A stretch of 64,000 bases of DNA from Ranitomeya imitator (Eukaryota). The position numbers and the translations under genes were made by a program. Position 1 is the first letter of the stretch. Every line of letters begins with the position of its first letter. Below the pieces are notes generated by a model. That model was not told the origin of the DNA and made no database searches. It saw only the letters and a program-made list of their open reading frames with translations. This document shows, piece after piece, positions 1 to 26,710 of the stretch. Location: assembly GCF_032444005.1 (NCBI RefSeq), contig NC_091287.1, positions 562,464,001 through 562,528,000 of the forward strand. Reading direction: 5' to 3'.

Positions 1-5
1 GTCAG

Positions 6-70
6 CCAATAGAAGCTCAGGACGGTGCAGCTCAGCAGCCAATCAGTGCGCTGTAAGCCTGTACATATAA
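6..70 (+). promoter_or_regulatory. Histone H1 proximal promoter (two CCAAT boxes and TATA)
   Basis: CCAAT at 6-10 and 39-43, TATAA at 66-70, about 75 bp upstream of the H1 ATG. Confidence 0.8.
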
Positions 71-142
71 CAGGCGCCTCCAGCTCCGGCCTCAGTGTTT
101 TTATTCCTATCAGGAAATATTTTCATTTTGCTTCCGCAGCAC

Positions 143-790
143 ATGATGGCAGAGACCGCGCCAGCCGCCGCTCCCCCTCCCGCAGAACCGGCCGCCAAAT
201 CCAAGAAGCAGCCGAAGAAATCCGCCGCCAAGAAGAGCAATAAACCCTCCGGCCCCAGCGTCTCCGAGCTGATCGTGAAAGCCGTGTCCGCCTCCAAGGA
301 GCGCAGCGGGGTGTCCCTGGCCGCCCTGAAGAAGGCTCTGTCTGCCGGAGGATACGATGTAGAGAAGAATAACAGCCGCCTGAAGCTGGCCGTCCGGGGT
401 CTGGTCACCAAGGGCGCCCTCCTCCAGGTGAAGGGCAGCGGCGCCTCCGGCTCATTCAAGCTGAACAAGAAGCAGGAGACGAAGGACAAAGTGGCCAAGA
501 AGAAGTCAGCAGCTGCGGCCAAACCCAAAAAACCCGCTGCTGCCAAGAAAGCCGCCAAATCTCCGAAGAAGCCCAAGAAGGCTCCGACCGCGGCCAAGAA
601 GAGCCCGAAAAAGGCCAAGAAGCCCGCAGCAGCCGCCAAGAAAGCAGCCAAGAGCCCCAAGAAGCCGAAAGCCGCGCCCAAGCCCAAGAAGGTGACGAAG
701 AGTCCAGCTAAGAAGGCGGCCAAACCCAAAACTGCCAAGAGTCCGGCTAAGAAGGCGGCTAAAGCCAAGAAGCCCGCGGCCAAGAAATAA
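143..790 (+). CDS. H1: Replication-dependent linker histone H1 (somatic amphibian type), 215 aa from ATG143 or 214 aa from ATG146
   Basis: Globular domain ([30 protein letters not shown]...[14 protein letters not shown]), K/A/P-rich tail with SPKK motifs, intronless, followed by a histone stem-loop. The ORF-track start at 95 is a non-ATG upstream extension. Confidence 0.98.
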
Positions 791-818
791 GCTGCAGCCC
801 CTGTTCTGTTACCACAAA

Positions 819-859
819 GGCTCTTTTCAGAGCCACCACCCCGTCCCCGCAGAGCTGTA
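819..859 (+). terminator. Histone 3' processing signal of H1: stem-loop 819-834 and HDE 851-859
   Basis: AAA-GGCTCT-TTTC-AGAGCC-ACCAC is the canonical SLBP stem-loop. AGAGCTGTA starts 17 nt after the stem and matches the vertebrate HDE consensus AAAGAGCTG. Confidence 0.95.
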
Positions 860-3800
860 TGATCAGTGCCACCACCTCCTCCCCGCAGAGCTGTATGATC
901 AGTGCCACCACCTCCTCCCTGCAGCGCTGTATGATCAGAGCCACCACCTCCTCCCCGCAGAGCTGTATGATCAGTGCCACCACCTCCTCCCCGCAGAGCT
1001 GTATGATCAGAGCCACCACCTCCCCGCAGAGCTGTATGATCAGAGCCACCACCTCCCCGCAGAGCTGTATGATCAGAGCCACCACCTCGTCCCCGCAGAG
1101 CTGTATGATCAGAGCCACCACCTCCTCCCCGCAGAGCTGTATGATCAGTGCCACCACCTCCTCCCCGCAGAGCTGTACCATCCGTGCCACCACCTCCTCC
1201 CCGCAGAGCTGTACGACCAGTGCCACCACCTCCCCGCAGAGCTGCATGATCAGTGCCTCCACCTCCTCCCCGCAGAGCTGTACGATCAGTGCCACCACCT
1301 CCCCGCAGAGCTGCATGATCAGTGCCACCACCTCCTCCCCGCAGAGCTGTATGATCAGTGCCTCCACCTCCTCCCCGCAGAGCTGTATGATCAGTGCCTC
1401 CACCTCCTCCCCGCAGAGCTGTATGATCAGTGCCACCACCTCCCCGCAGAGCTGTATGATCAGTGCCTCCCCGCAGAGCTGTATGATCAGAGCCACCACC
1501 TCCTTCCCGCAGAGCTGTATGATCAGTGCCTCCACCTCCTCCCCGCAGAGCTGTATGATCAGAGCCACCACCTCCTCCCCGCAGAGCTGTATGATCAGTG
1601 CCACCACCTCCTCCCCGCAGAGCTGTATGATCAGTGCCACCACCTCCTCCCCGCAGAGCTGTATGATCAGTGCCACCACCTCCCCGCAGAGCTGCATGAT
1701 CAGTGCCACCACCTCCTCCCCGCAGAGCTGTATGATCAGTGTCACCACCTCCCCGCAGAGCTGCATGATCAGTGCCTCCACCTCCTCCCCGCAGAGCTGT
1801 ATGATCAGAGCCACCACCTCCTCCCCGCAGAGCTGTATGATCAGTGCCACCACCTCCTCCCTGCAGCGCTGTATGATCAGAGCCACCACCTCCTCCCCGC
1901 AGAGCTGTATGATCAGTGCCACCACCTCCTCCCTGCAGCGCTGTATGATCAGAGCCACCACCTCCTCCCCGCAGAGCTGTATGATCAGTGCCACCACCTC
2001 CTCCCCGCAGAGCTGTATGATCAGAGCCACCACCTCCCCGCAGAGCTGTATGATCAGAGCCACCACCTCCCCGCAGAGCTGTATGATCAGAGCCACCACC
2101 TCGTCCCCGCAGAGCTGTATGATCAGAGCCACCACCTCCTCCCCGCAGAGCTGTATGATCAGTGCCACCACCTCCTCCCCGCAGAGCTGTACCATCCGTG
2201 CCACCACCTCCTCCCCGCAGAGCTGTACGACCAGTGCCACCACCTCCCCGCAGAGCTGCATGATCAGTGCCTCCACCTCCTCCCCGCAGAGCTGTACGAT
2301 CAGTGCCACCACCTCCCCGCAGAGCTGCATGATCAGTGCCACCACCTCCTCCCCGCAGAGCTGTATGATCAGTGCCTCCACCTCCTCCCCGCAGAGCTGT
2401 ATGATCAGTGCCTCCACCTCCTCCCCGCAGAGCTGTATGATCAGTGCCACCACCTCCCCGCAGAGCTGTATGATCAGTGCCTCCCCGCAGAGCTGTATGA
2501 TCAGAGCCACCACCTCCTTCCCGCAGAGCTGTATGATCAGTGCCTCCACCTCCTCCCCGCAGAGCTGTATGATCAGAGCCACCACCTCCTCCCCGCAGAG
2601 CTGTATGATCAGTGCCACCACCTCCTCCCCGCAGAGCTGTATGATCAGTGCCACCACCTCCTCCCCGCAGAGCTGTATGATCAGTGCCACCACCTCCCCG
2701 CAGAGCTGCATGATCAGTGCCACCACCTCCTCCCCGCAGAGCTGTATGATCAGTGTCACCACCTCCCCGCAGAGCTGCATGATCAGTGCCTCCACCTCCT
2801 CCCCGCAGAGCTGTATGATCAGAGCCACCACCTCCTCCCCGCAGAGCTGTATGATCAGTGCCACCACCTCCTCCCTGCAGCGCTGTATGATCAGAGCCAC
2901 CACCTCCTCCCCGCAGAGCTGTATGATCAGTGCCACCACCTCCTCCCCGCAGAGCTGTATGATCAGTGCCTCCACCTCCTCCCCGCAGAGCTGTATGATC
3001 AGTGCCTCCACCTCCTCCCCGCAGAGCTGTATGATCAGTGCCACCACCTCCTCCCCGCAGAGCTGTATGATCAGTGCCACCACCTCCTCCCTGCAGCGCT
3101 GTATGATCAGAGCCACCACCTCCTCCCCGCAGAGCTGTATGATCAGTGCCACCACCTCCTCCCCGCAGAGCTGTATGATCAGAGCCACCACCTCCCCGCA
3201 GAGCTGTATGATCAGAGCCACCACCTCCCCGCAGAGCTGTATGATCAGAGCCACCACCTCCTCCCCGCAGAGCTGTATGATCAGAGCCACCACCTCCTCC
3301 CCGCAGAGCTGTATGATCAGTGCCACCACCTCCTCCCCGCAGAGCTGTATGATCAGTGCCACCACCTCCTCCCCGCAGAGCTGTACCATCCGTGCCACCA
3401 CCTCCTCCCCGCAGAGCTGTACGACCAGTGCCACCACCTCCCCGCAGAGCTGCATGATCAGTGCCTCCACCTCCTCCCCGCAGAGCTGTACGATCAGTGC
3501 CACCACCTCCCCGCAGAGCTGCATGATCAGTGCCACCACCTCCTCCCCGCAGAGCTGTATGATCAGTGCCTCCACCTCCTCCCCGCAGAGCTGTATGATC
3601 AGTGCCTCCACCTCCTCCCCGCAGAGCTGTATGATCAGTGCCACCACCTCCCCGCAGAGCTGTATGATCAGTGCCTCCCCGCAGAGCTGTATGATCAGAG
3701 CCACCACCTCCTTCCCGCAGAGCTGTATGATCAGTGCCTCCACCTCCTCCCCGCAGAGCTGTATGATCAGAGCCACCACCTCCTCCCCGCAGAGCTGTAT

Positions 3801-4262
3801 GATCAGTGCCACCACCTCCTCCCCGCAGAGCTGTATGATCAGTGCCACCACCTCCTCCCCGCAGAGCTGTATGATCAGTGCCACCACCTCCCCGCAGAGC
3901 TGCATGATCAGTGCCACCACCTCCTCCCCGCAGAGCTGTATGATCAGTGTCACCACCTCCCCGCAGAGCTGCATGATCAGTGCCTCCACCTCCTCCCCGC
4001 AGAGCTGTATGATCAGTGCCACCACCTTCTCCACGCAGAGCTGTATGATCAGTGTCACCACCTCCCCGCAGAGCTGCATGATCAGTGCCTCCACCTCCTC
4101 CCCGCAGAGCTGCATGATCAGTGCCTCCACCTCCTCCACGCAGAGCTGTATGATCAGTGCCTCCACCTCCTCCCCGCAGAGCTGTATGATCAGTGCCACC
4201 ACCTTCTCCACGCAGAGCTGTATGATCAGTGTCACCACCTCCCCGCAGAGCTGTACGATCAG
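827..4262 (+). repeat. 36/33-bp minisatellite (about 97 units) derived from the H1 3' processing signal
   Basis: Unit TCAG(T/A)GCCACCACCTCCTCCCCGCAGAGCTGTATGA begins in the loop/3' arm of the stem-loop. It has 33-bp and 24-bp deletion variants and ends at ...ctgtacgatcag|ttttc. Confidence 0.97.
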
Positions 4263-4645
4263 TTTTCTTACTTGTAATGCTTTTAATATAACTGATGCTG
4301 GGCGCAGTTTCTGGATGGGGGGTGGGTGTGATCTGACGATATTGCGGGAGCTGCACTGTACAGCGCTATACACGGGGACATTTCAACGCAGATACATCAG
4401 ATGCTCCAGCAGCGGCAAATGAGTGATCTGAGGACAGACTCATCACGGAAGAGGAGGGGACTTCAGGGGGCGGGGTTACTGGGCGGGAATAATAACAATG
4501 ACTGGTCAAACACATCAACCCTTATTGGCCACTTTATTTCATGAAATAACCAGTGGAGCGCAAGGGGGCGTGTTTCCCAGAGACCAATGAGGACACGCAT
4601 GATGAGTATGATGTGACAGCCGCCGACCCCCTGGGACAATGACTG

Positions 4646-4722
4646 GAGTATAAGCCGAGAGGGGCACTTTCAGCCTAATAAAATGGCTGAAAATCTCAGC
4701 TTATTCTCGAGTATATAAGGTA
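4646..4722. mobile_element. Probable Tc1/mariner-superfamily (Tc2/pogo-like) MITE terminal remnant; duplicated at 13763-13839
   Basis: gagtataagccgag...ctcagcttattctcgagtatataagg|ta is an imperfect inverted repeat ending in TA. It resembles a TACCGTATATACTCGAGTATAAGCCGA-type terminus I recall from frog repeats; not verified by search. Confidence 0.45.
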
Positions 4723-5908
4723 AATGCCTCTGGCACTATGGAGGGTGATGTAGTAGGGATTATTTTTCTGTTACACTGGTTTTCAACCCTCTTGCTGCTT
4801 GTAAAGTTATTACATTAAGGCGAACAATTAAAAAAAACACCAACAAACTAATAATTTGTACTTTACAATTATGGGCACGTTCCTGTAATTTTGCATTAAA
4901 GCATGATATTTTATATATTTAAAAAAAATGCATAAAAATGTCTTTCTGGGTTGTAATTGGTACATGAGGTAACGGCATAAATGAACATATCATCATCCGG
5001 TGATTAAATGATGGAAGATCTCTTCTAATTTCACTTGCTTCTTTTGTCCTTCCAAATCTCCATTTATGGAAGTTCTTCATCAGAAAATGAACAAATGTCT
5101 ATCATTGCATTACGCTGAGGTTGGGTCGCTCTGGGGGTATCACACTCTATAGGGGGTAACTGTGGGTGCATCATATTGTGTGGGGGTGACTTAGGGCCTC
5201 ATACTGTTTTGGGAGTTACCGGGGGTTTCATACCCCCACACAGTAACTGTGGGGAGATCCTGCTGTGTGGGTATCTTACTATGTAGGAGGCATCATACTG
5301 TGTGGAGGGTAACTGGGGGCATCATCTGTTGTGGAGGGTATGATCCACCATGATCTGGAACAGTAATGACAATATTTGGGATACCCTCAGTCATAAGGGG
5401 AGGAAATTGCACATAATAGAAGCTGGAAAGATAATTGCAGAAACTGAGCAATGAGCGGGAAAATCAAACTTCCTTACAGTTTAGTATTTAGCCAATCAGC
5501 AGAGAAAGGGAGGAGCTAATGTAACCTCATGTACCAATCATAACCCAGAAAGACACATTGTTATGCAGTGTTTATATAAAATGTTATGCTTTACTGCAAA
5601 ATTACAGGAATGTGCCGTTTTTTTTTTGTTTTTTTTCTTGAATTGTTCTAATTTAATGTCAAAACTGAACTGGAAGCAAACCAAAATTTAAAAGTAATCC
5701 TTACTACATCACCCTCTATAGTGCCAGAGGCATTTGCTTTCTTATAACCAGGACTTACTTCTTCGAAATTGGGGCCTGAGTAGCTGTCGGATGGGCAGGA
5801 AGGCTTCTGGGTCCCAGTAGGGCACTGTAGGAAAAATAACAGGTTGGATCCACTACAAATTACAGCACAAAAGGCATTTCCGCAATGAGATCTGCAGCAG
5901 AAGAAAAG

Positions 5909-6906: not shown

Positions 6907-7296
6907 GAGAGAGAAATAAAGAGAGAAACACAAAGAGAGAGAGAGAGTGAAAGAGAGAGAATGAGAGAGAGAGAGAGAGAGAAAGGGATAAAAAAAATAG
7001 AGAGAGAAATACAAAGAGAAAGAAAGAGAGAAGTAGAGAGAGAATAAAGAGAGATATAGAAAGAGAGAAGGAAAGAGAGATAGATATAAAGTGAGAAAAA
7101 GAAAGAGAAAGCAAAGGAAAGAGAGGGAGAGAGAGAAATAGAAATGAAGAAAGAGTAAGAGTGAGAGAAAGATTTAGAGAAAGAAGAAGAGAGAAAGAAA
7201 GAGAGGAGAAAGGAGAGAGAGAGAAATAATGAAAGAGAGGAGAGAGAAATAGAGATTAAGAAAGAGGGAGAGAGAGAAAGAAGAAGAGAGGAGAGA
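6907..7296 (+). repeat. GA-rich low-complexity microsatellite tract
   Basis: About 390 bp of almost pure A/G with (GA)n and (GAAA)n runs. Confidence 0.95.
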
Positions 7297-9987
7297 CTGC
7301 TCTATATACTGTACACTCTGGTCTATAAACTGTACACACTGCTGTATATACTGTACACTCTGCTCTATATACTGTACACTCTGCTCTATATACTGTACAC
7401 ACTGCTGTATATACTGTACACTCTGCTCTATATACTGTACACTCTGCTCTATATACTGTACACTCTGCTCTATATACTGTACACACTGCTGTATATACTG
7501 TACACTCTGCTCTATATACTGTACACTCTGCTCTATATACTGTACACACTGCTGTATATACTGTACACTCTGCTGTATATACTGTACACACTGCTCTATA
7601 TACTGTACACTCTGCTCTATATACTGTACACTCTGCTCTATATACTGTACACACTGCTGTATATACTGTACACTCTGCTGTATATACTGTACACACTGCT
7701 CTATATACTGTACACTCTGCTCTATATACTGTACACTCTGCTCTATATACTGTACACACTGCTGTATATACTGTACACACTGCTCTATATACTGTACACA
7801 CTGCTCTATATACTGTACACGCTGCTGTATATACTGTACACTCTGCTCTATATACTGTACACTCTGCTCTATATACTGTACACACTGCTGTATATACTGT
7901 ACACACTGCTCTATATACTGTACACACTGCTCTATATACTGTACACGCTGCTGTATATACTGTACACACTACTCTATATACTGTACACTCTGCTCTATAT
8001 ACTGTACACACTGCTGTATATACTGTACACGGTGCTGTATATACTGTACACACTGCTCTATATACTGTACACTCTGGTATATAAACTATACTCACTGCTG
8101 TATATACTGTACACACTGCTGTATATACTGTACACACTGCTCTATATACTGTACACTCTGCTCTATATACTGTACACACTGCTGTATATACTGTACACAC
8201 TGCTCTATATACTGTACACACTGCTCTATATACTGTACACGCTGCTGTATATACTGTACACACTACTCTATATACTGTACACTCTGCTCTATATACTGTA
8301 CACACTGCTGTATATACTGTACACGCTGCTGTATATACTGTACACACTGCTCTATATACTGTACACTCTGGTATATAAACTGTACACTCTGCTGTATATA
8401 CTGTACACTCTGCTCTATATACTGTACACACTGCTGTATATACTGTACACGCTGCTGTATATACTGTACACACTGCTCTATATACTGTAGACTCTGCTGT
8501 ATATACTGTACACTCTGCTCTATATACTGTACACACTGCTGTATATACTGTACACGCTGCTGTATATACTGTACACACTGCTCTATATACTGACCACTCT
8601 GCTTTATATACTGTAAACTCTCCTCTATATACTGTGCACACTGCTGTATATACTGTACACTCTGCTCTATATACTGTACACTCTGTTGTATATACTGTAC
8701 ACTCTCCTCTATATACTGTGCACACTGCCGTATATACTGTACACTCTGCTCTATATACTGTACACTCTGCTCTATATACTGTACACTCTGCTGTATATAC
8801 TGTGCACACTGCTGTATATACTGTACACACTGCTCTATATACTGACCACTCTGCTTTATATTCTGTAAACTCTCCTCTATATACTGTGCACACTGCTGTA
8901 TATACTGTACACTCTGCTGTATATACTGTACACTCTGCTCTATATACTGTACACTCTGCTCTATATACTGTACACTCTGCTGTATATACTGTGCACACTG
9001 CTGTATATACTGTACACTCTGCTCTATATACTGTACACTCTGCTCTATATACTGTACACTCTGCTGTATATACTGTACACTCTGCTCTATATACTGTACA
9101 CTCTGCTGTATATACTGTACACTCTGCTGTATATACTGTACACACTGCTCTATATACTGCACACTCTGCTCTATATACTGTACACTCTGCTCTATATACT
9201 GTACACACTGCTGTATATACTGTACACTCTGCTGTATATACTGTACACTCTGCTCTATATACTGTACACTCTGCTGTATATACTGTACACACTGCTCTAT
9301 ATACTGTACACTCTGCTCTATATACTGTACACTCTGCTCTATATACTGTACACTCTGCTCTATATACTGTACACTCTGCTCCATATACTGTGCACACTGC
9401 TGTATATACTGTACACTCTGCTCTATATACTGTACACTCTGCTCTATATACTGTACACTCTGCTGAATATACTGTACACTCTGCTCTATATACTGTACAC
9501 TCTGCTCTATATACTGTACACTCTGCTGAATATACTGTACACTCTGCTCTATATACTGTACACTCTGCTCTATATACTGTACACTCTGCTCTATATACTG
9601 TACACTCTGCTGTATATACTGTACACTCTGCTCTATATACTGTACACTCTGCTCTATATACTGTACACTCTGCTGTATATACTGTGCACACTGCTGTATA
9701 TACTGTACACACTGCTCTATATACTGCACACTCTGCTCTATATACTGTACACTCTGCTCTATATACTGTACATTCTGCTGTATATACTGTACACACTGCT
9801 GTATATACTGTACACACTGCTGTATATACTGTACACTCTGCTCTATATACTGTACACTCTGCTCTATATACTGTACACTCTGCTCTATATACTGTACACA
9901 CTGCTGTATATACTGTACACTCTGCTGTATATACTGTACACTCTGCTCTATATACTGTACACTCTGCTGAATATACTGTACACACTG
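7297..9987 (+). repeat. 21-bp minisatellite, about 128 units
   Basis: Unit CTGCT(C/G)TATATACTGTACAC(T/A) with variants; contains the palindromic TGTACA and TATATA. Confidence 0.97.
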
Positions 9988-10761: not shown

Positions 10762-10897
10762 GAAGCACAAGGGGAGAGCGGAGCTTCAACCGGAATCAGC
10801 TGGGAGGAGGCGGGGCCTGTGTCCAGTGTCAGCCAATAGAAGCTCAGGACGGTGCAGCTCAGCAGCCAATCAGTGCGCTGTAAGCCTGTACATATAA
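10762..10897 (+). promoter_or_regulatory. Histone H1 promoter copy 2 (AC-box-like, GC box, two CCAAT boxes, TATA)
   Basis: gAAGCACA near 10762 (variant of the H1 box AAACACA), GGAGGCGGGG near 10806, CCAAT at 10833 and 10866, TATAA at 10893. This is the order known for vertebrate H1 promoters. Confidence 0.75.
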
Positions 10898-10969
10898 CAG
10901 GCGCCTCCAGCTCCGGCCTCAGTGTTTTTATTCCTATCAGGAAATATTTTCATTTTGCTTCCGCAGCAC

Positions 10970-11617
10970 ATGATGGCAGAGACCGCGCCAGCCGCCGCTC
11001 CCCCTCCCGCAGAACCGGCCGCCAAATCCAAGAAGCAGCCGAAGAAATCCGCCGCCAAGAAGAGCAATAAACCCTCCGGCCCCAGCGTCTCCGAGCTGAT
11101 CGTGAAAGCCGTGTCCGCCTCCAAGGAGCGCAGCGGGGTGTCCCTGGCCGCCCTGAAGAAGGCTCTGTCTGCCGGAGGATACGATGTAGAGAAGAATAAC
11201 AGCCGCCTGAAGCTGGCCGTCCGGGGTCTGGTCACCAAGGGCGCCCTCCTCCAGGTGAAGGGCAGCGGCGCCTCCGGCTCATTCAAGCTGAACAAGAAGC
11301 AGGAGACGAAGGACAAAGTGGCCAAGAAGAAGTCAGCAGCTGCGGCCAAACCCAAAAAACCCGCTGCTGCCAAGAAAGCCGCCAAATCTCCGAAGAAGCC
11401 CAAGAAGGCTCCGACCGCGGCCAAGAAGAGCCCGAAAAAGGCCAAGAAGCCCGCAGCAGCCGCCAAGAAAGCAGCCAAGAGCCCCAAGAAGCCGAAAGCC
11501 GCGCCCAAGCCCAAGAAGGTGACGAAGAGTCCAGCTAAGAAGGCGGCCAAACCCAAAACTGCCAAGGGTCCGGCTAAGAAGGCGGCTAAAGCCAAGAAGC
11601 CCGCGGCCAAGAAATAA
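10970..11617 (+). CDS. H1: Linker histone H1, second copy
   Basis: Identical to 143-790 except AGT to GGT at 11567 (KTAKSPA to KTAKGPA). Confidence 0.98.
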
Positions 11618-11645
11618 GCTGCAGCCCCTGTTCTGTTACCACAAA

Positions 11646-11686
11646 GGCTCTTTTCAGAGCCACCACCCCGTCCCCGCAGAGCTGTA
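11646..11686 (+). terminator. Histone stem-loop (11646-11661) and HDE of H1 copy 2
   Basis: GGCTCTTTTCAGAGCC-ACCAC followed by GCAGAGCTGTA. Confidence 0.95.
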
Positions 11687-13379
11687 TGATCAGTGCCACC
11701 ACTTCCTCCCCGCAGAGCTGTATGATCAGAGCCACCACCTCCTCCCCGCAGAGCTGTATGATCAGTGCCACCACCTCCTCCCTGCAGCGCTGTATGATCA
11801 GAGCCACCACCTCCTCCCCGCAGAGCTGTATGATCAGTGCCACCACCTCCTCCCCGCAGAGCTGTATGATCAGTGCCTCCACCTCCTCCCCGCAGAGCTG
11901 TATGATCAGTGCCTCCACCTCCTCCCCGCAGAGCTGTATGATCAGTGCCACCACCTCCTCCCCGCAGAGCTGTATGATCAGTGCCACCACCTCCTCCCTG
12001 CAGCGCTGTATGATCAGAGCCACCACCTCCTCCCCGCAGAGCTGTATGATCAGTGCCACCACCTCCTCCCCGCAGAGCTGTATGATCAGAGCCACCACCT
12101 CCCCGCAGAGCTGTATGATCAGAGCCACCACCTCCCCGCAGAGCTGTATGATCAGAGCCACCACCTCCTCCCCGCAGAGCTGTATGATCAGAGCCACCAC
12201 CTCCTCCCCGCAGAGCTGTATGATCAGTGCCACCACCTCCTCCCCGCAGAGCTGTACCATCCGTGCCACCACCTCCTCCCCGCAGAGCTGTACGACCAGT
12301 GCCACCACCTCCCCGCAGAGCTGCATGATCAGTGCCTCCACCTCCTCCCCGCAGAGCTGTACGATCAGTGCCACCACCTCCCCGCAGAGCTGCATGATCA
12401 GTGCCACCACCTCCTCCCCGCAGAGCTGTATGATCAGTGCCTCCACCTCCTCCCCGCAGAGCTGTATGATCAGTGCCTCCACCTCCTCCCCGCAGAGCTG
12501 TATGATCAGTGCCACCACCTCCCCGCAGAGCTGTATGATCAGTGCCTCCCCGCAGAGCTGTATGATCAGAGCCACCACCTCCTTCCCGCAGAGCTGTATG
12601 ATCAGTGCCTCCACCTCCTCCCCGCAGAGCTGTATGATCAGAGCCACCACCTCCTCCCCGCAGAGCTGTATGATCAGTGCCACCACCTCCTCCCCGCAGA
12701 GCTGTATGATCAGTGCCACCACCTCCTCCCCGCAGAGCTGTATGATCAGTGCCACCACCTCCCCGCAGAGCTGCATGATCAGTGCCACCACCTCCTCCCC
12801 GCAGAGCTGTATGATCAGTGTCACCACCTCCCCGCAGAGCTGCATGATCAGTGCCTCCACCTCCTCCCCGCAGAGCTGTATGATCAGTGCCACCACCTTC
12901 TCCACGCAGAGCTGTATGATCAGTGTCACCACCTCCCCGCAGAGCTGCATGATCAGTGCCTCCACCTCCTCCCCGCAGAGCTGCATGATCAGTGCCTCCA
13001 CCTCCTCCACGCAGAGCTGTATGATCAGTGCCTCCACCTCCTCCCCGCAGAGCTGTATGATCAGTGCCACCACCTTCTCCACGCAGAGCTGTATGATCAG
13101 TGTCACCACCTCCCCGCAGAGCTGCATGATCAGTGCCTCCACCTCCTCCCCGCAGAGCTGCATGATCAGTGCCTCCACCTCCTCCACGCAGAGCTGTATG
13201 ATCAGTGCCTCCACCTCCTCCCCGCAGAGCTGTATGATCAGTGCCACCTCCTTCTCCACGCAGAGCTGTATGATCAGTGTCACCTCCTCCTCCCCGCAGA
13301 GCTGTATGATCAGTGTCACCACCTCCCCGCAGAGCTGTATGATCAGTGTCACCACCTCCCCGCAGAGCTGTACGATCAG
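11654..13379 (+). repeat. 36/33-bp H1 3'-signal minisatellite, about 49 units
   Basis: Same unit, start and end points as 827-4262, but about half the length. Confidence 0.97.
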
Positions 13380-14608
13380 TTTTCTTACTTGTAATGCTTT
13401 TAATATAACTGATGCTGGGCGCAGTTTCTGGATGGGGGGTGGGTGTGATCTGACGATATTGCGGGAGCTGCACTGTACAGCGCTATACACGGGGACATTT
13501 CAACGCAGATACATCAGATGCTCCAGCAGCGGCAAATGAGTGATCTGAGGACAGACTCATCACGGAAGAGGAGGGGACTTCAGGGGGCGGGGTTACTGGG
13601 CGGGAATAATAACAATGACTGGTCAAACACATCAACCCTTATTGGCCACTTTATTTCATGAAATAACCAGTGGAGCGCAAGGGGGCGTGTTTCCCAGAGA
13701 CCAATGAGGACGCGCATGATGAGTATGATGTGACAGCCGCCAACCCCCTGGGACAATGACTGGAGTATAAGCCGAGAGGGGCACTTTCAGCCTAATAAAA
13801 TGGCTGAAAATCTCAGCTTATTCTCGAGTATATAAGGTAAATGCCTCTGGCACTATGGAGGGTGATGTAGTAGGGATTATTTTTCTGTTACACTGGTTTT
13901 CAACCCTCTTGCTGCTTGTAAAGTTATTACATTAAGGCGAACAATTAAAAAAAACACCAACAAACTAATAATTTGTACTTTACAATTATGGGCACGTTCC
14001 TGTAATTTTGCATTAAAGCATGATATTTTATATATTAAAAAAAAATGCATAAAAATGTCTTTCTGGGTTGTAATTGGTACATGAGGTAACGGCATAAATG
14101 AACATATCATCATCCGGTGATTAAATGATGGAAGATCTCTTCTAATTTCACTTGCTTCTTTTGTCCTTCCAAATCTCCATTTATGGAAGTTCTTCATCAG
14201 AAAATGAACAAATGTCTATCATTGCATTACGCTGAGGTTGGGTCGCTCTGGGGGTATCACACTCTATAGGGGGTAACTGTGGGTGCATCATATTGTGTGG
14301 GGGTGACTTAGGGCCTCATACTGTTTTGGGAGTTACCGGGGGTTTCATACCCCCACACAGTAACTGTGGGGAGATCCTGCTGTGTGGGTATCTTACTATG
14401 TAGGAGGCATCATACTGTGTGGAGGGTAACTGGGGGCATCATCTGTTGTGGAGGGTATGATCCACCATGATCTGGAACAGTAATGACAATATTTGGGATA
14501 CCCTCAGTCATAAGGGGAGGAAATTGCACATAATAGAAGCTGGAAAGATAATTGCAGAAACTGAGCAATGAGCGGGAAAATCAAACTTCCTTACAGTTTA
14601 GTATTTAG

Positions 14609-14714
14609 CCAATCAGCAGAGAAAGGGAGGAGCTAATGTAGATTATGAAAGCCCCGCCTCGGATATGCGTCATCTCTGTAGTTCTCTCTCTGGTCCATTC
14701 TTCCTCCATATAAA
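14609..14714 (+). promoter_or_regulatory. Histone H4 promoter
   Basis: CCAAT 14609-14613, GC box CCCCGCCTC near 14652, H4 subtype element core GGTCC 14692-14696, TATAAA 14709-14714. Confidence 0.75.
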
Positions 14715-14756: not shown

Positions 14757-15077
<321 letters not shown>

Positions 15078-16541: not shown

Positions 16542-16958
16542 GCTAGTCAGCTGTGCCAGGACTGTAAACTCCGCTCCTCCGCATCTGTCCACACACCCAA
16601 AGGCTCTTCTAAGAGCCCCCACATCCTCCTCCTAAGAGCCGCACCGCCGATCTAGGGATGGTTCACACTAGTGTCTGCTCACACTGCACCAAGCGGTATA
16701 TAGAGGTCACTATGCACGATCCATGCTCCACTGTACTGCGGTCACCACAGAGCAGAGATTCATGGCTGAAGTGACTGATCCGCCTTCATGTTACTGAGAT
16801 CACACACAAGAGGGATAAGTGCAGTTTATACAGGGGACAAAGCTCCTGAGGGAAGCCGGCTCTTCCTAGAAAACTGGGTGCGGCTACTACCGTAACATCT
16901 CACTGAATTCACAGCTTTCCACGCTGCAGGGTTTACAGTCCTGGCACAGCTGACTAGC
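16542..16958. repeat. Perfect 28-bp inverted repeat pair (16542-16569 and 16931-16958) bracketing the orphan stem-loop
   Basis: gctagtcagctgtgccaggactgtaaac and its exact reverse complement gtttacagtcctggcacagctgactagc, with a 361-bp spacer. Confidence 0.9.
16602..16640 (+). terminator. Orphan histone stem-loop (no upstream histone ORF) with TAAGAGCC repeated 23 bp downstream
   Basis: CCCAAA-GGCTCT-TCTA-AGAGCC-CCCACATCCTCCTCC-TAAGAGCC. The hairpin is identical to the H2B one at 17893. Confidence 0.85.
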
Positions 16959-17892: not shown

Positions 17893-17931
17893 GGCTCTTC
17901 TAAGAGCCACCCACACCCTCACTATAAGAGC
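17893..17931 (+). terminator. Histone stem-loop (17893-17908) and HDE-like CTATAAGAGC (17922-17931) of H2B
   Basis: AAA-GGCTCT-TCTA-AGAGCC-ACCCA is canonical; purine core AAGAG at 17926-17930. Confidence 0.95.
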
Positions 17932-18735
17932 CCCCGCACCCTCACTATAAGAGCCCCCTCACTATAAGAGCCGCCCCCGCACCCTCACTATAAGAGCCGC
18001 CCACACCCTCACTATAAGAGCCGCCCGCACCCTCACTATAAGAGCCGCCCACACCCTCACTATAAGAGCCCCCCGCACCCTCACTATAAGAGCCCCCCGC
18101 ACCCTCACTATAAGAGCCCCCCGCACCCTCACTATAAGAGCCGCCCGCACCCTCACTATAAGAGCCGCCCGCACCCTCACTATAAGAGCCCCCCGCACCC
18201 TCACTATAAGAGCCCCCCGAACCCTCACTATAAGAGCCCCCCGCACCCTCACTATAAGAGCCGCCCACACCCTCACTATAAGAGCCGCCCACACCCTCAC
18301 TATAAGCCGCCCACAGCCTCACTATAAGAGCCACCCACACCCTCACTATAAGAGCCACCCGCACACTCACTATAAGAGCCGCCCACACCCTCACTATAAG
18401 AGCCGCCCACACCCTCACTATAAGAGCCGCCCACACCCTCACTATAAGAGCCGCCCACAGCCTCACTATAAGAGCCGCCCACACCCTCACTATAAGAGCC
18501 ACCCACACCCTCACTATAAGAGCCACCCGCACCCTCACTATAAGAGCCCCACGCACCCTCACTATAAGAGCCGCCAACAGCCTCACTATAAGAGCCGCCC
18601 ACACCCTCACTATAAGAGCCGCCCACACCCTCACTATAAGAGCCGCCCACACCCTCACTATAAGAGCCGCCCACACCCTCACTATAAGAGCCACCCACAC
18701 CCTCACTATAAGAGCCGCCAACAGCCTCACTATAA
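17901..18735 (+). repeat. 24-bp H2B 3'-signal satellite, proximal part (about 35 units)
   Basis: Unit TAAGAGCCACCCACACCCTCACTA; the first unit (17901-17924) is the loop/3' arm of the H2B stem-loop plus its downstream sequence. Confidence 0.98.
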
Positions 18736-19113
18736 GGGTACGTTCACATTAGCGTCATGCGACGCTGCGTCGCCGACGCAACGCACGACGCATCGGAAAC
18801 GCACGCAAAAACGCAACTTTTATGACGCAAGCGTCTGACGGATGCGTCGTAAAACGCAGCGTTTTCGGTGCGTTTTTGGTGCGTTTTACCAAAAAACGCA
18901 GCGTTTTACGACGCATGCGTTGGCAAACACTGATTGGATCTTGAGCCACAATTTAGTGTCTAGACACTAGATAACACCACCAATGAATAGAAGAGGGTGG
19001 GTCTAGTGTCTAGACAATCGATAATGTCACCAATGGGTAGATGGGGGTGGGTATTAATGTCATAGTGGTATATATACCCCCGCATACCTTATTTCCAACC
19101 ATACAGCATCAAG

Positions 19114-20497
19114 ATGGATCGTTCCATGGAGAGTATCTACCTCACTTTTGAGCTGGAATTAGCCCTTGCTATAGCTTATGCTTTTGCCTGTCATGAACAG
19201 AGGAGAAGAGACAAACTACGGAGAAGGAGTCGGCGGCGTTTTTGGCTTCACCCTATAGTGGAAGTCCGAGAGAGTCGTGGAGCGTACCATTGTCTTTTTG
19301 GCGAATTAAATGAGAACCAGGACAAATACTTAGAATACACCAGGATGACAAAAGACAGCTTTCGATATCTGCTGCGTCTGGTGGAAGGAACCATTTCCAG
19401 GCAGGACACGCAGCTCCGTAAATCGATTTCCCCTGAGGAGCGTCTGCTGGTGACTCTACGGTACGTAATGGAATGTGAAGGATTTATATGTTCTAGCCAT
19501 TTTTTAAATTAACATGTTTTTGTTTTGCGGGGTGGGGGATTGTAATTAAAAATGGAAAATTCATTCATAACAATTAAATTAATTATATTTATTTATTTTT
19601 CTTCTTGTCAGTTTCCTGGCTACCGGAGAGACATTGAGATCACTGCATTTCCAGTTTCGGATTGGAGTCTCAACACTGTCGGGTATTATTGCAGACACAT
19701 GCCGCGCATTGTGGGACAACCTCCGGGAGGAATTTTTGCCCATCCCTACACAAGAAATATGGCATGCCAACGCCCAAAAATTCCACAAAGTTTGTGATTT
19801 CCCTAACTGTATCGGAGCTGTGGATGGGAAGCACATTAGGATTACCAAGCCGTCAAGAAGTGGATCTCTTTTTTATAATTATAAAAAATACTTTTCCACT
19901 GTGCTGATGGCAATTGCTGGTGCGGACTGCAGGTTTCTCGCTGTGGACATTGGAGCCTTTGGTCGTGCAAATGATTCACGGACATTTAAGGAGTCTGATA
20001 TGGGCCAAAGATTGTACAATAACAATTTTAATTTCCCCCATCCACGACCTCTTCCCAACACTGACGGCCCGGACCTGCCATTTGTTGTTGTTGGTGATGA
20101 GGCTTTTCAAATGAGTGGCAACCTACTGAAACCGTACTCCAGTCGTGGGTTGGACCGTACCAAAACTATATTTAATTATAGACTGTCCAGGGCCAGAAGA
20201 ACTGTGGAGTGCGCCTTTGGCATCCTGGTCTCCAAATGGCGTATATTAGGATCCGCTATAAATTTGAAAATTGAGACAGTGGATGAGGTGGTGAAGGCGT
20301 GTGTGGTTCTCCACAATTTTATTATTGATAAAGAGAGAGTCAACGTGGAACTCGATGAACACATACAAAATCCATTGCCTGATTATCAAGATCATCCTCT
20401 GCGGACAACTGTGGAGATTGCTCATATGAGGGACCAATTTGCTGCATACTTTGTTTCCGATGTTGGCCGTGTTTCATGGCAAGATGAAATGGTGTAA
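19114..20497 (+). CDS. Harbinger DDE transposase (HARBI1-like, DDE_Tnp_4 type); 2 exons 19114-19460 and 19612-20497, 410 aa
   Basis: Donor CG|GTACGT at 19460/19461 and acceptor TTCTTGTCAG| at 19611 join LLVTLR-FLATGETLRSLHFQFRIG in frame. Catalytic motifs GAVDGKH, VGDEAF and RRTVECAFG are present; 1233 nt with no lesions. Confidence 0.92.
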
Positions 20498-21188
20498 TTC
20501 TGTATGTTTTATTATGATGTCATGTAAACACTGTTGTGTTCATCATTTAACCATCCTATGTATGGTGATTCTATGGTTATTGTTTTAATGTTCCCTGGAT
20601 GTATAATGTGTTGTGTTTTCAAATACACTTCTTGAGCCTTTCAGTTTTTAAAAAAAAAAATTTCATACGTTTATACATATTAATAAAATTTAAAAAATCC
20701 AAATTTATTGAAATTTATTGAATTTATTGAAAGTACTAATGTGTGTGCCACAAAATTTGTGTGTTTCATAGTATTGAGGCATAACATAATCGGCTCCCAC
20801 CTTGTCAACCATTATTAATCCTGCAGACTATTTGCATATGGAACAAGGCTTGACAAGGAGGGAGACGATCATGTTTGCTAAACTCTACAGAGTGAACACT
20901 ATTGTACTCAGGATGCTATAATACGTCCAGAGTCAAATAGTGGTGACACTGTCAACATTGCTTCCATCTCACCTGAACAATATTCTTAAGGTACATTTAA
21001 TAAAACTATTATCCACCGATACCGACCAGTGATACGACTGGACCGAGATCGTTGTTTAGTTGTCGCATGGTTGCTGGAGAGCTGTCACACATACAGCTCC
21101 CCAGCAACAAAAAAAGAGCAATCTGTGTAATGCCACACTCACGATATTTACTATTGTTAATGTAATGTTAATTACAAAAAAAACCTTA

Positions 21189-21912
21189 AGGCCCCTTCAC
21201 ATTTAGCGACGCTGCAGCGATACAGACAACGATTCGGATCGCTGCAGCGTCGCTGTTTGGTCGCTGGAGAGCTGTCACACAGACCGCTCTCCAGCGACCA
21301 ACGATGCCGGTAACCAGGGTAAACATCGGGTAACTAAGCGCAGGGCCGCACTTAGTAACCCGATGTTTACCCTGGTTACCATGCTAAAAGTAAAAAAAAA
21401 CAAACACTACATACTTACCTACAGCCGTCTGTCCTCCAGCGCTGCGCTCTGCTTCTCTGCTCTCCTCCTGTACTGTCTGTGAGCTGGAAATCAGAGCGGT
21501 GATGTCACCGCTCTGCTTTCCGGCTCACAGCCAGTACAGGAGGAGTGCAGAGCACAGCGCTGGAGGACAGACAGCGTTAGGTAAGTATGTAGTGTTTGTT
21601 TTTTTTACTTTTAGCATGGTAACCAGGGTAAACATCGGGTTACTAAGCGCGGCCCTGCGCTTAGTTACCCGATGTTTACCCTGGTTACCAGTGAAGACAT
21701 CGCTGGATCGGTGTCACACACGCCGATCCAGCGATGTCAGCAGGAGTCCAGCGACGAAATAAAGTTCTGGACTTTATTCAGCGACCAACGATCTCCCAGC
21801 AGGGGCCTGATCGTTGGTCGCTGTCACACATAACGATTTAATTAACTATATCGTTGCTACGTCACAAATAGCAACGATATCGTTAACAATATCGTTATGT
21901 GTGAAGGTACCT
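21189..21912. mobile_element. Nested non-autonomous Harbinger-type fold-back MITE, 724 bp
   Basis: Imperfect TIRs AGGCCCCTTCACATTTAGCGA (left) and AGGTACCTTCACACATAACGA (right, reverse complement), related to the host TIR GGGTACGTTCACA. TSD TTA (21186-21188 and 21913-21915). Long inverted arms centred near 21503, each with an internal ~70-bp hairpin. Confidence 0.85.
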
Positions 21913-22614
21913 TTACACTACGGTGTGTGAAACGTCCATCGCCGTCAGCTTCCCGTACTGTGCCAGCCCTAAAGCACAGCACAGCGTTTAAGGCAACGGT
22001 GTGCTCAGCTTTACGGGCGGGAATCACAGTGTCAGTGCGGAAAGATGACGGCGAGGGACTTGGTAGACACCTTTTTATATTAGTGGGGTATTGTAAACTT
22101 TTTATTTCAGTGATTAAAACAGTGCACTACCCAATTTTCCCTTGTTTAAAACAAAGACATCGCTGGATTGGTGTGAACTCACCAATCCAACAATGACAGC
22201 TTCTGATAAGTTACCCAAAAAATATTCCAAATCATTTGCTGATAACCAAAAAATCACAGCAGGGGCTCAATCGTTTTACGATTTCAGAAAAGACAAAGTT
22301 AAAACAACTATATCCATACTGAAATCGTTGTGTGATGGTACTTTGTAAACGTGACATATTGAGCAATGCTGTTTGTGTTTGTAACATCTGAGTACAATGA
22401 ACGACAGCCATATAAGAAAATGTTAAAAAAAATAGAGATAATATTGTCACACATTGCACATCTGGTGTTACAAAGACACGATTTGTGTGTACGGCGCAAG
22501 GTGTGATTTGGTGCAAACTTTATTTGAGACAATAAAAACCAAAATTTTTTTTTTAAAAAAAATATAACAAATTTATTTTGTGTTACAAAAAAAATAAAAA
22601 AAGGGAACCCGGTT

Positions 22615-25370
22615 TTAAGGGGTGCCAATGTCCGCAACCAAAGGGGATTCATATCCCCCAGTTTTTTGTGATGAGGAGACCGAGGAGGAGGAAGAGGGGG
22701 AGGAAGCAGCATACTCTATGACACTAGACGGGATGCCGACATCAGTCCAGCCAGTGGATGGTGGTGGCGAGACTGCAACAGAAGCAGGTGAGAGAGGAGG
22801 AGGGACGACCAGTGTCCTTGGCTGGCTACTCCGGCTCTGGGTCGACCCAGGCTGTGTAGATGGTGTACTCCTGGTTGACCCAGGCTGGGTAGTGGGTGTA
22901 CTCCGTGTAGACCCAGCCTGGGTACTTGGTGTGCTCCGGGTCGACCCAGGCTGTGTTCTGGTGGTACTTTGGGGAGCAGCCATAGCCAAGGACGTAGTGC
23001 TTGTGGTCGTCATGGTCTTCTTCTTCTTCTTTTTCCTCCTCTCTCCCTCTGGGTGGGGGTCGGCTTCCCGTCTGTGCCCCCTTGAAGGCCTGTCAGGCTC
23101 GGAACTTTGGGGCTCAGTTCTGTGGTGGCGGTGGCGGCGGCGGTGGCCCTCGGCACGCGGACCTCTGTGGTGGTGCTCTGCAGCAGGAGTCGGAGTCATG
23201 GCAGCCAGCGATGGTACTGCGGGCATATTTGTCGCTGACTGCATGACCCGAGCCTGCTGCAGAGCACTGACATATAAATTGTTGCAGCCCTGCATGAACG
23301 AAATCTGGAGTTCCGGCGTAAGATGTTCCACCATGCCGTTGTGAATGGCACTAAAGAAATGTTTTGCCGGCCTCGAGAGATCCGTTTCGATGTTTTCAAG
23401 ACGCCGTTGGATATTGCACATTTTATCGCACAGCGCCTTGAAACCATTCTGAAATACGGTACTCAGATGTAAAAATTCGGACATGGGCGCCCTGTCCGAG
23501 GCCCGCTGACGCTGTCGGGAAGACCCAAAGGACGGAGCAACAGAGGCCTCGGCCAGAGGAACATCTGATGGACCGGCTGCCGGTTCGCCAGATTGTGTTG
23601 TTGCAGACCTGCTCTCGCTGTGGGATGGCCGCGACAGTTCAGATGGCGCTTCACAAAGGACCGCTCTTGAGGGTCGTCTTGAGGATTGGACAGTCTCGCG
23701 GGTGCTGCTGTGTGTTCTGTGAAAACATAAGGAAACCATTAGTATAAAAAATATCACATTTCACATGCGTCAGAACATTTTACCGCCAGGTATCCATTAC
23801 CGCCATTAATATTACACTATTTTTAATATTGACACTGCATATGCACCATCAATATTAAACAAACGGTATTTATTTAATTCTAAAGAGTCACCCATGTTTT
23901 TAGTTTGCAACGCCAGACAATTATGCTTAGGTTGGAACTGCCATCACGTCACGGTCATGTGAACGAGACGTCATCACAGGTCCTGCGAGCTGAGCAACCA
24001 TGGGAACCTAACCAGCTTTGCAGTGGAATGTATGCCGTATCTATTATATTTAACTTTATTATGTATAAAAAATCGTAGATACACCTGGCAAGTGTGAGAA
24101 GATAAGAAATGAATAAAAAATTCAAGGTCAACGAGTGGTGAAAAGTTTAAAAAAAAAAATGTTTTAACTTCAATCAAAAGCAGAGGATGAAACATCTGCA
24201 CAATACAATAAAAAAACTATCTACGCGTTTCAGGTCTGATGTTCCCTGTCACCTGAAACACGTAGATAGAGTCTATTGTATTGTGCTGATGTTTGATCCT
24301 CTGCTTATGATTCAAGAGGAGAAAAGTATGTATTTTTGCACAACTCTGTGAACTAGCCTTTTTTTACTTCATTTATATACTTGGTACTTGGCAAAATAAA
24401 TGGCTGGGCAATAAGCAACGTGACTGGAATGTAGTATGTGAATATGCATGTTGTGAAAACTAGGTGTGTGAATAGGTACTATACTTACTCTCTGCTTTCA
24501 AGGACCGGTCGCAAGAACTGCAGTATACGGTTATGCTTGTACACCGAGGTCCTTGAAGCGCCAGCACCACTACGAGCCTGTCCCTCCTTTTTCAGGCCCC
24601 TCTTGAAACGGTCCTTCATGGAGCGCCATCTGGTCCTCAATTGTTTAACTGTGTATTAAAAAAAAAAAAAAAAAAAGGTTTTAGATAATATATCGAAAAA
24701 GATTACGCAACCGTGTGCAATCCCAATCAAAGACATCACAGACGGTTGTGTAATCCTGGCATGATGGGTCACAGCACTATTTTTTAAATACTTACGGAAA
24801 CTGGCTTTGGCCTTGGCGTTAGCGCTGTCGAAGCCATCCCACAGCGTTTGTGCCACCTCCAACCACAGACGCCGCAATATGCCCTGGTCCGCGTGCTGGG
24901 GGTCACGGCTGTCCCACAACGGGCCCCGTGCTTCTATTGATGCCACCATTAGGTCAATGTTAAGTGGCTCATCCAGGGCCCGTTGTGAAACCTAGAAAAG
25001 AATGGAAAATATGAAGGTTTGAAAGAGAAAAAAATTGTCCCTATCTCCTCCACCGACACCTACTACACACAACACCACACCCTACCACCACCCCCCCAAT
25101 ACCCGCAAAAAAAAAAATAAAAAAAAAATAAAGGTTTGAAATAAATACTTACGCTCCGTCCTGCAACCACAGCTTGGCCCCGTGGTCCCTGCTGCTGCTC
25201 CCTCTCTTCCTCCTGGTTCTCCTCCTCACTTGAAGAAGCCTGCAAAATAGTTTAACAAAAAGTTGAGTGACCCATCTACAAATGACAGCGAAAATATAGC
25301 AAGCAATAGTAGATCATGTACTCACCGGACTCCTCAGCGGTGGGGTGCCGGAATCACTGCCGCTGGCCAT
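22615..25370 (-). CDS. Harbinger accessory MADF (Myb/SANT-like) DNA-binding protein; 5 exons 25370-25326, 25239-25153, 24991-24796, 24648-24489, 23716-22615; 529 aa
   Basis: All junctions are GT-AG and in phase (45+87+196+160+1102 = 1590 nt). MADF signature LMVASIEARGPLWDSRDPQH...LWLEVAQTL...LRTRWRSMKDRFKR...YKHNRILQFLRP. Possible BESS-like segment HFFSAIHNGMVEHLTPELQISF. Low-complexity S/T/P tail. Confidence 0.88.
24172..24312. repeat. ~140-bp palindromic hairpin in intron 4 of the MADF gene
   Basis: Arms aatcaaaagcagaggatgaaacatctgcacaatacaata...ctatctacgcgtttcaggt and acctgaaacacgtagatag...tattgtattgtgctgatgtttgatcctctgcttatgatt around a 15-nt loop. Confidence 0.85.
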
Positions 25371-26710
25371 GACTAATTAAAGCAGTTCTGAAATTAACAA
25401 AAAAATAACATTGACTATGCTCCTATGCACTATCATGCAATAAATAATATTAAAAAAAAAAGGCATTTAAACCACAAATAACATTGCACTCCAACTGAAC
25501 TAACGATGAGCAAACTACACTGCCACATTGATTAGATTAAAGAAACAATGGCAGAGACAACCCAATGCCAGAGTACAAAAGGCTAAAGATAAGAAAATTA
25601 ACAAGTACACAATGTAGTAATCCCAAAAGATTTTTTTAAAAAAGAAAAATTACAGTATGCACGGATCAACACAAAAAACACAATATGTGGTTGTAATAAA
25701 AAATATTTCAACACGAAAAAAAATAAGGGCAGAAACATAAATACTTTACAATGAAACCAACAGTGCCGGAGAAAATAGAAGGGGATACAACGCCATACAT
25801 CGCAACCAGAAACATACAACTATGTATTTACACAACCACAGTGCTGAAAATAATACACAAATTGCAATAAAAATGTAATAAAAGGCCTCAAAATCATTCT
25901 ATACTACCATACTTTACAAAACAACCGACAGGGCCAGAGACAATGAAACGCCATCATATAACGGAAGAATAAAACAGCACAACTGAATACAAAAACAACA
26001 CCAAACCAAAAAATGGAAACTCAAAATCAATCTTGGAAAGAACACTAATCAAGGCCGCAGACAATGAAACGCCATCCTATACACAATGCCGTCCATCAAA
26101 ACCAAACCAAAAAGACCACAATATCTTTAGCCACAGTGCAGAATATAAAACACTACTTGCAAAAAAAATTGTAAAAACATGTAGAAAATGCACATAATCA
26201 TTCTATACTTACATCTCTGGACAGCGGATGAGAAGACAGTTGCTCTGATGTGTCTGGTCTGATGTTGCCTGTTGTGTAGCCGGCAGCAGAAGTGACAAAC
26301 AATCCTACATTTTCTTTATATATGGGGGATGTTTTTCTCACTGTTTGCACTGTCTAGACACTGTCTAGACACTTTTTTGTTTCATTTTATGTTACGACGC
26401 ATGCGTCGCACAACGCATGCACGACGCACACCCGCGACGCAAGTGCGTCGTCAATACGTTTCAATGGGAAATTGTAACGCATTGACGACGCACGAGCGAC
26501 GCGCGCGTTTTTTTGGCGCTCCGAAAATGCAACATGTAGCGTCTCCGACGCCACCCAGGTGCGGTGTTACGACGCATGCGTCGTGCGTTTTACTGAAAAC
26601 GCACGACAACGCAACGCATGCGTCCCCAATGATAAAGATAGGGGCGCATGACGCATGCGTTGTCGTGCGTCGGCGACGCAGCGTCGCATGACGCTAATGT
26701 GAACGTACCC

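Follow-up and report, generated by a model that had tools for sequence, protein, structure and literature searches.

The layout of the histone gene cluster in the newt Notophthalmus was reportedly described by Stephenson, Erba and Gall in 1981, and the satellite found there has a unit of about 220 bp; to our knowledge, no report has derived this satellite from a processing signal. Newt histone genes lie beside satellite DNA, and on lampbrush chromosomes read-through from the histone promoters enters the satellite (PMC11602149, citing Diaz and Gall 1985). PcP190 is a satellite of hyloid frogs that derives from 5S ribosomal DNA (PMC11675491, PMC4201667). The stretch of DNA discussed here, referred to as the window, comprises 64,000 nucleotides of Ranitomeya imitator (NC_091287.1, positions 562,464,001 to 562,528,000), a dendrobatid poison frog, and holds a cluster of its histone genes. 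Directly behind each of its two H1 genes lies a tandem array, with a unit of 36 bp, which repeats part of the signal for H1 mRNA 3' processing. These arrays are probably a lineage-specific minisatellite that was born of the H1 3' processing region, grew by unequal exchange, is separate from a second event at the H2B gene, and consists of passenger units beyond the first one.

Like the newt clusters, the window presents amphibian histone genes followed directly by long tandem-repeat tracts that lie open to polymerase coming from a histone promoter; the difference is that in the window the signal itself serves as the repeat unit, and that two genes each made their own. PcP190 offers the other likeness, because it is a frog satellite that arose out of a functional piece of a tandem multigene family. 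However, its unit is about 190 bp long, comes from a transcribed RNA gene and has spread across frog families, whereas the H1 array has a 36-bp unit, comes from an mRNA 3' processing signal and has so far been met only in dendrobatid-like data. The newt clusters are the closest described situation and PcP190 is the closest case of origin. Literature searches for repeats derived from the stem-loop or from the histone downstream element (HDE) found no published description, and in a 2026 review of histone gene organisation covering more than 250 species neither "satellite" nor "HDE" appears.

The canonical metazoan histone signal consists of a stem-loop (RF00032) and an HDE that is bound by the U7 small nuclear ribonucleoprotein (snRNP); the purine-rich HDE core is complementary to the U7 5' end and lies about 10-15 nt past the cleavage site. 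Behind the first H1 gene this signal appears to be complete at 819-859: the stem has 6 bp, the loop is of the UYUN type, the tail is ACCA, and the core of the predicted HDE starts 12 nt beyond the ACCAC tail and lies 12 nt past the expected cut (Table 1). Rfam recognises the full stem-loop at 814-860 with 34.2 bits, compared with a gathering score of 34, and gives the same 34.2 bits to the second copy at 11641-11687. The HDE, AGAGCTGTA, is predicted to form 9 contiguous base pairs (-14.0 kcal/mol) with the 5' end of mouse/human U7 (sequence from PMC7026596), which serves as a proxy for the frog U7, and only 2 of 300 shuffled sequences reach this value. The first unit and the single complete stem-loop have canonical geometry and should process H1 mRNA normally. 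The departure from the canonical signal lies in the 97 further units of array A, which repeat its 3' half only (arm, tail, spacer and HDE) and in which a stem-loop is impossible.

Tandem Repeats Finder reports array A with period 36 at 827-4263 (98.1 copies, 90% matches, score 5460). Each unit opens with the last two bases of the loop, continues with the 3' arm, ACCACC and a spacer, and closes with the HDE followed by TGA. A preliminary description of this DNA had placed the start of the 36-bp unit in the H1 loop, and accurately so, as repeat homology begins at T827, the third loop base; its statements that the unit holds the ACCAC tail together with the full HDE, and that it closes on a TCAG just after the HDE, hold as well. 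At the right edge, the TCAG at 4259-4262 gives way to the unique flank TTTTCTTAC. The exact HDE occurs in 79 of the 98 units and CCACCACC in 70, and the BclI site that had been noted in most units is present in 88. The length variants are due to 3- and 9-bp indels, which come from slippage in the (ACC)2(TCC)2 spacer. The stem has fared differently: the arm AGAGCC is found in only 26 units, with TGCC in its place in 64, and the 5' arm GGCTCT is found in no unit. Scanning positions 1-27500 with RF00032 returned no match to an interior unit, and its only two matches are the gene-proximal ones. Because the interior units have no 5' arm, SLBP cannot bind them. A protein-coding array was considered and rejected: long open reading frames (ORFs) do cross it in both orientations, but only because the unit has no stop codon in several frames and the indels of 3 and 9 bp are slippage products. 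The G-rich strand carries no canonical G3+ G-quadruplex motif, only two-tetrad ones.

The source of the array becomes clear from the H1 genes of two other hyloid frogs. The H1 3' flank of Leptodactylus fuscus (locus L115, 10906-10953) matches window positions 819-866 at 42 of 48 bases, and that of Rhinoderma darwinii (locus L116, 4697-4745) at 44 of 49 bases. Both loci show a stem-loop, ACCACC, a spacer of 10-11 nt and GCAGAGCTGTATGATC, all in single copy, and in neither is there an array behind the H1 stem-loop. The 16-nt block GCAGAGCTGTATGATC is identical in L. fuscus, R. darwinii and the R. imitator window, hence in three frog families. Furthermore, the first unit of the window shares a G with L. 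fuscus (CCG and TTG, respectively), while the interior consensus is TCC and a rare TCG unit is intermediate. Since the orthologous flanks of both outgroups are single copy, the array grew from the signal of the gene and not the reverse. As far as these alignments tell, the first unit is the ancestral and still-working signal from which the array arose.

Another possibility is that the match to H1 is secondary, either because a dispersed or pre-existing 36-bp satellite landed beside the gene or because the array is an assembly artefact. The first idea draws on the fact that frog histone clusters hold many unrelated minisatellites, such as one of 21 bp with 128 copies in the window, one of 30 bp with 96 copies about 1 kb upstream of the R. 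darwinii H1 gene (L116, 66-2988) and unrelated to its stem-loop, and several in the L. fuscus cluster (L115); hyloid histone clusters generally seem to be repeat-rich. The second idea draws on two 1014-bp blocks of array A that are 100% identical. Nevertheless, a 22-nt unit probe allowing up to 3 mismatches found 147 matches in the window, where 0 are expected, and all of them lie on the + strand within arrays A and B, directly behind the two H1 stem-loops and in gene orientation. Moreover, the first unit runs on from the stem-loop without a break and is the orthologue of the flank that both outgroups have in single copy, which removes the dispersed repeat that had been named as an alternative to the H1 3' end. 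The 31-mers of the unit are present in sequencing runs of at least 5 coded organism labels from 11 studies; therefore, the repeat is real DNA common to several related species and not the artefact of a single assembly. A secondary or artefactual origin is thus very improbable.

The ancestor of the array was the single-copy arrangement of stem-loop, ACCACC, 10-11-nt spacer and GCAGAGCTGTATGATC, which other hyloid frogs retain. Its birth, presumably in the dendrobatid lineage, may have occurred when misaligned copying or exchange joined the TCAG of the loop and arm to the TCAG three bases past the HDE, thereby duplicating 36 bp. The array then expanded by unequal crossing-over, and the duplication of the segment with H1 took the array with it. 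A longer microhomology was also considered, in which the majority unit start TCAGTGCC comes from the ancestral flank after the HDE, as R. darwinii has TCACTGGCC there; this was set aside as a weak possibility, because L. fuscus does not support it and the end of the array has no TGCC.

The mode of growth can be read from the arrangement of unit variants, each of which was coded as a letter for the comparison of arrays A and B. A higher-order block of 29-34 units is present in three copies in array A, at lags of 1014 and 1194 bp, and in one copy in array B; between positions 899-1912 and 1913-2926 all 1014 bases agree. The two arrays have the same unique first unit and the same last unit. They nevertheless contain 98 and 49 units, respectively, despite flanks that are 99.5-99.9% identical between the H1 copies; therefore, copy number changes much faster than single bases are substituted. 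With its head-to-tail units, higher-order blocks and copy-number difference between paralogues, the H1 array has the features expected of a minisatellite that evolves by unequal exchange. The pattern shows that unequal crossing-over of large blocks, including blocks of about 1 kb, drove the change of the array and still drives it.

The H2B gene of the same cluster is followed by an array of its own with a 24-bp unit, which resembles the H1 array in its start at the third base of the loop, its sense orientation and its richness in C. The two differ in period, spacer and breakpoint, in extent (at least 38 kb for H2B, 1.7-3.4 kb for H1), and in the presence of a copy of the arm in the place of the HDE in the H2B unit. 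The only sequence in common between the two units is AGAGCCACC, the stem arm plus ACC, which is functionally fixed in any histone gene; once it is removed, the likeness of the H1 and H2B units is no better than that of shuffled sequences (1463 of 2000 reach the score). This agrees with the preliminary description, which had distinguished the two repeats by period and spacer. Moreover, each unit starts with the last two loop bases of its own gene, TC for H1 and TA for H2B. The breakpoints are different too: at H1 the join runs from TCAG to TCAG and the unit reaches from the loop to the third base after the HDE, so that a true HDE is included, whereas at H2B it runs from the stem arm to the HDE position and the unit stops before the HDE, leaving no separate one.

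Given unit remainders that are unalike, together with different loop bases and breakpoints, the two arrays are to be read as separate tandemisations, each of the 3' end of its own gene, H1 or H2B. The claim that one functional element was tandemised twice independently therefore stands as regards the independent origins, for which loop bases, breakpoints and shuffles all speak, but not as regards the element, as the H2B unit has no separate HDE. In L. fuscus the H2B HDE, TAGAGCTG, lies 17 nt after the stem, the place that is taken in the window by a second TAAGAGCC, 16 nt after the H2B stem. The H2B event thus appears to have started when the 3' arm TAAGAGCC misaligned with the similar core of the HDE and was joined to the HDE position, which would yield a 24-bp unit without a separate HDE. 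Such a misalignment of arm and HDE finds support at H2B but not at H1.

Two further features of the H2B region can be mentioned. The 24-bp array is interrupted by a 7,975-bp PIF/Harbinger-type transposon (18736-26710), which has terminal inverted repeats that start with GGGTACGTTCAC and whose 51-nt arms are 96% complementary. The target-site duplication is TAA, at 18733-18735 and 26711-26713, and an ORF within the element encodes a DDE_Tnp_4 domain (19634-20497, E 7e-29). Excision of this element in silico restores a single continuous H2B array of at least 38 kb. Upstream of the H2B gene, an orphan stem-loop occupies 16602-16640, with the H2B-type loop (TCTA) and flank, no histone ORF upstream, and a second TAAGAGCC 15 nt after the stem, at the position expected for an HDE. 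It may represent a stem-loop with an HDE-like element and not a two-copy repeat seed and, because its loop and flank are of the H2B type, it is probably not a third independent case of tandemisation.

That two arrays of one cluster begin in a histone stem-loop raises the question of a mutational hotspot, which the preliminary description had put forward as a general one (e.g., breaks or R-loops at the cleavage/termination site). In both arrays the homology tract starts between loop bases 2 and 3, at the centre of the palindrome (826/827 and 17900/17901). The window holds five histone stem-loops, at 819, 11646, 15106, 16602 and 17893, and of the roughly 17,600 bases outside the arrays only 20 belong to their loops, so that two independent loop starts would be expected from position alone with a frequency of about 1e-6. 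A hairpin that provokes duplication, by fork stalling, nascent-strand displacement or loop breakage during a transcription-replication conflict in S phase, would explain why independent arrays start there. However, no repeat touches the stem-loop at any of 27 stem-loops from five other frogs (12 in Xenopus tropicalis, 5 in Spea bombifrons, 1 in Pristimantis, 7 in L. fuscus and 2 in R. darwinii), and none of 119 distinct environmental stem-loops on metagenome contigs has a loop-anchored array, although short-read contigs under-sample long arrays. The locus of Eleutherodactylus coqui (L114) has no canonical stem-loop. Outside this lineage, the outcome is hence the lack of enrichment that the preliminary description had itself named as speaking against its proposal, and a general hotspot at histone stem-loops is not supported.

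A tandemised histone 3' end with a similar period was found once among the environmental contigs, namely on a eukaryote contig (L057, JAAUXV010179534.1, about 520-640). Here the likeness ends with the period of about 32 bp, because the contig has only four copies, the outer ones degenerate, and repeats whole stem-loops with their flank.

In addition to the absence of loop-anchored arrays elsewhere and to the whole stem-loops repeated in this one tandem case, other points reduce the appeal of a hairpin mechanism. The true crossover may fall anywhere within the microhomology, the H2B boundary is accounted for by the similarity of arm and HDE, and the events number just two. R-loops in particular are disfavoured by the C-rich sense strand, for which the GC skew is -0.35 in the H1 arrays and -0.57 in the H2B array; an R-loop-prone termination zone would have a G-rich non-template strand and a positive GC skew, and neither array does. 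Furthermore, unrelated minisatellites abound in hyloid histone clusters, so that repeats forming at a high background rate, together with many gene copies, may explain part of what is seen. A hairpin hotspot is, on balance, a tentative and rather doubtful explanation of the two loop starts.

The remaining question is whether the extra units do anything. Most likely they are passengers and look like a side effect of errors in DNA copying, because the later units have no 5' arm and thus no SLBP, match U7 over 9 bp only, and keep the 3' arm in the minority of cases noted above. Processing that is independent of SLBP needs a strong U7 duplex, 15 bp in the example described, and a substrate from which the stem-loop was deleted was not cut by the endogenous U7 snRNP (PMC7026596). 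Compared with such a substrate, the interior units fall short, with 9 contiguous base pairs predicted against the mammalian proxy. Only the first unit, with its complete stem-loop, would then act as the 3' processing signal of H1 mRNA.

Alternatively, the array may be a working, multimerised signal, in which dozens to hundreds of HDEs on read-through RNA serve as fail-safe sites of cleavage and termination, soak up U7 snRNP locally, or provide a platform for docking at the histone locus body. The exact 9-nt HDE in most units, its constant sense orientation downstream of H1 and the calculated -14 kcal/mol duplex with mammalian U7 all fit this idea, as does the read-through from histone promoters into satellite DNA that is known in newt and Xenopus oocytes (PMC11602149). 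The HDE also has fewer variable positions (2 of 9) than the rest of the unit (15 of 27), but the difference is not significant (p = 0.13), and concerted evolution alone would keep a unit consensus. The RNA evidence is thin. For the Logan contigs of runs X1 and X15 the kind of data is uncertain; in X1, which is RNA only by guess, a contig spans 136-858, across the cleavage site into unit 1, but its end at 858 is where 31-mers become repeated, and the unit contigs of this presumed RNA have a summed depth about 8 times that of the coding region. In poly(A) RNA of a related species, 1 and 15 reads with 90-95% likeness end in the stem-loop bin, which are too few to conclude from.

Other facts are harder to reconcile with a working array: the ancestral single copy suffices in other frogs, the units cannot bind SLBP and offer a duplex that is short for SLBP-independent cutting, and near-identical H1 copies differ two-fold in copy number. 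The selection for multimerised signals that had been suggested earlier is not demonstrated, as the HDE value is not significant, three units in four have lost the arm sequence, and H1 copies whose flanks are nearly identical differ by a factor of two in the number of units. A function of the H1 array as a multimerised signal is therefore unlikely. It is also improbable that the HDE arrays of H1 and the arm/HDE-like arrays of H2B are used together, with read-through RNA that bears tens to hundreds of sites complementary to U7 and so concentrates U7 snRNP at the histone locus or provides repeated fail-safe sites of cleavage and termination; if this were true, a satellite would have been recruited into the histone mRNA 3'-end machinery of poison frogs.

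Some observations weigh against a lineage-specific minisatellite made of passengers. The smaller number of variable positions in the HDE leans towards constraint, even at the p value given. The conservation of the 16-nt block GCAGAGCTGTATGATC in three frog families indicates that the real U7 duplex could exceed 9 bp; frog U7 may pair beyond 9 nt at GCAGAGCTGTATGATC, or another factor may bind there. Assembly duplication could, in principle, be the source of the fully identical 1014-bp blocks. Finally, the H1 and H2B arrays share precisely one and the same starting point within the loop, which simple chance microhomology does not predict.

The H1 array represents a clean and datable birth of a satellite from a functional RNA-processing signal, with the ancestral single copy surviving in related frogs, the founder unit still in place and working, and a second independent birth at a neighbouring gene. 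Satellite-DNA biology gains a case in which origin, breakpoints and growth mode are directly readable. For the biology of histone mRNA, arrays that are complementary to U7 but have no stem-loops, located right downstream of an active gene, amount to a natural experiment, and the H1 arrays could reveal whether an HDE is enough by itself to recruit U7 snRNP or to influence termination. Should the copies turn out to be inert, the locus is a neat but ordinary instance of repeat evolution.

Table 1. Coordinates of the histone genes, 3' processing signals and derived arrays in the window.
Feature	Position	Strand	Details
H1 gene, copy 1	143-790	+	215 codons plus stop; ORF, Pfam, likeness to Ranitomeya variabilis
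H1 3' stem-loop, copy 1	819-834	+	stem GGCTCT 819-824, loop TTTC 825-828, arm AGAGCC 829-834; sole complete stem-loop of array A
Processing signal, copy 1	835-859	+	tail ACCACC 835-840 (expected cleavage site), 10-nt spacer, HDE AGAGCTGTA 851-859
Array A	827-4262	+	98 units by own parsing: 72 of 36 bp, 22 of 33 bp, 3 of 27 bp, plus terminal unit
Unique 3' flank beyond array A	4263-5523	+	also present at copy 2; 1255/1261 aligned bases identical
H1 gene, copy 2	10970-11617	+	ORF, sequence comparison with copy 1
H1 3' stem-loop, copy 2	11646-11661	+	Rfam RF00032
Array B, behind H1 copy 2	11654-13379	+	49 units; Tandem Repeats Finder and own parsing
H4 gene	14766-15077	+	
H2B gene	from 17483	+	partly masked as N
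H2B 3' stem-loop	17893-17908	+	loop TCTA
H2B-derived 24-bp array, proximal part	17901-18735	+	starts at third loop base; Tandem Repeats Finder
H2B 24-bp array, continuation beyond the transposon	26711-64000	+	runs off the window end

All histone genes in the window are on the + strand. The encoded H1 protein has 97% identity with the H1 of Ranitomeya variabilis and is recorded in exactly this form in assembly GCA_032444005.1, and Pfam finds the Linker_histone domain (PF00538) in copy 1 with an E value of 6e-22. Over the upstream region and gene, 825 of 826 bases agree between the two H1 copies, which belong to a segmental duplication (1-5523 and 10828-14641) that contains H1, the H1 array and the 1.26-kb flank. 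In the first segment homology stops at about 5523 and an inverted copy of about 4740-4970 follows, while in the second the homologous part is followed by the H4 promoter and gene. The unrelated 21-bp minisatellite already mentioned (7297-9987, unit CTGCTCTATATACTGTACACT) lies between both H1-bearing segments, has no connection to any stem-loop, and is preceded by a degenerate GA-rich tract at 6907-7296.

A splice-acceptor-like tract, ttttgcttccgcag, is located at 121-142, immediately upstream of the H1 start codon, and the contig of run X1 begins at 136. For the R. variabilis homologue, the annotation gives a 240-aa product and a gene of 13.6 kb. The tract may mark an upstream exon, or may reflect an annotation artefact.

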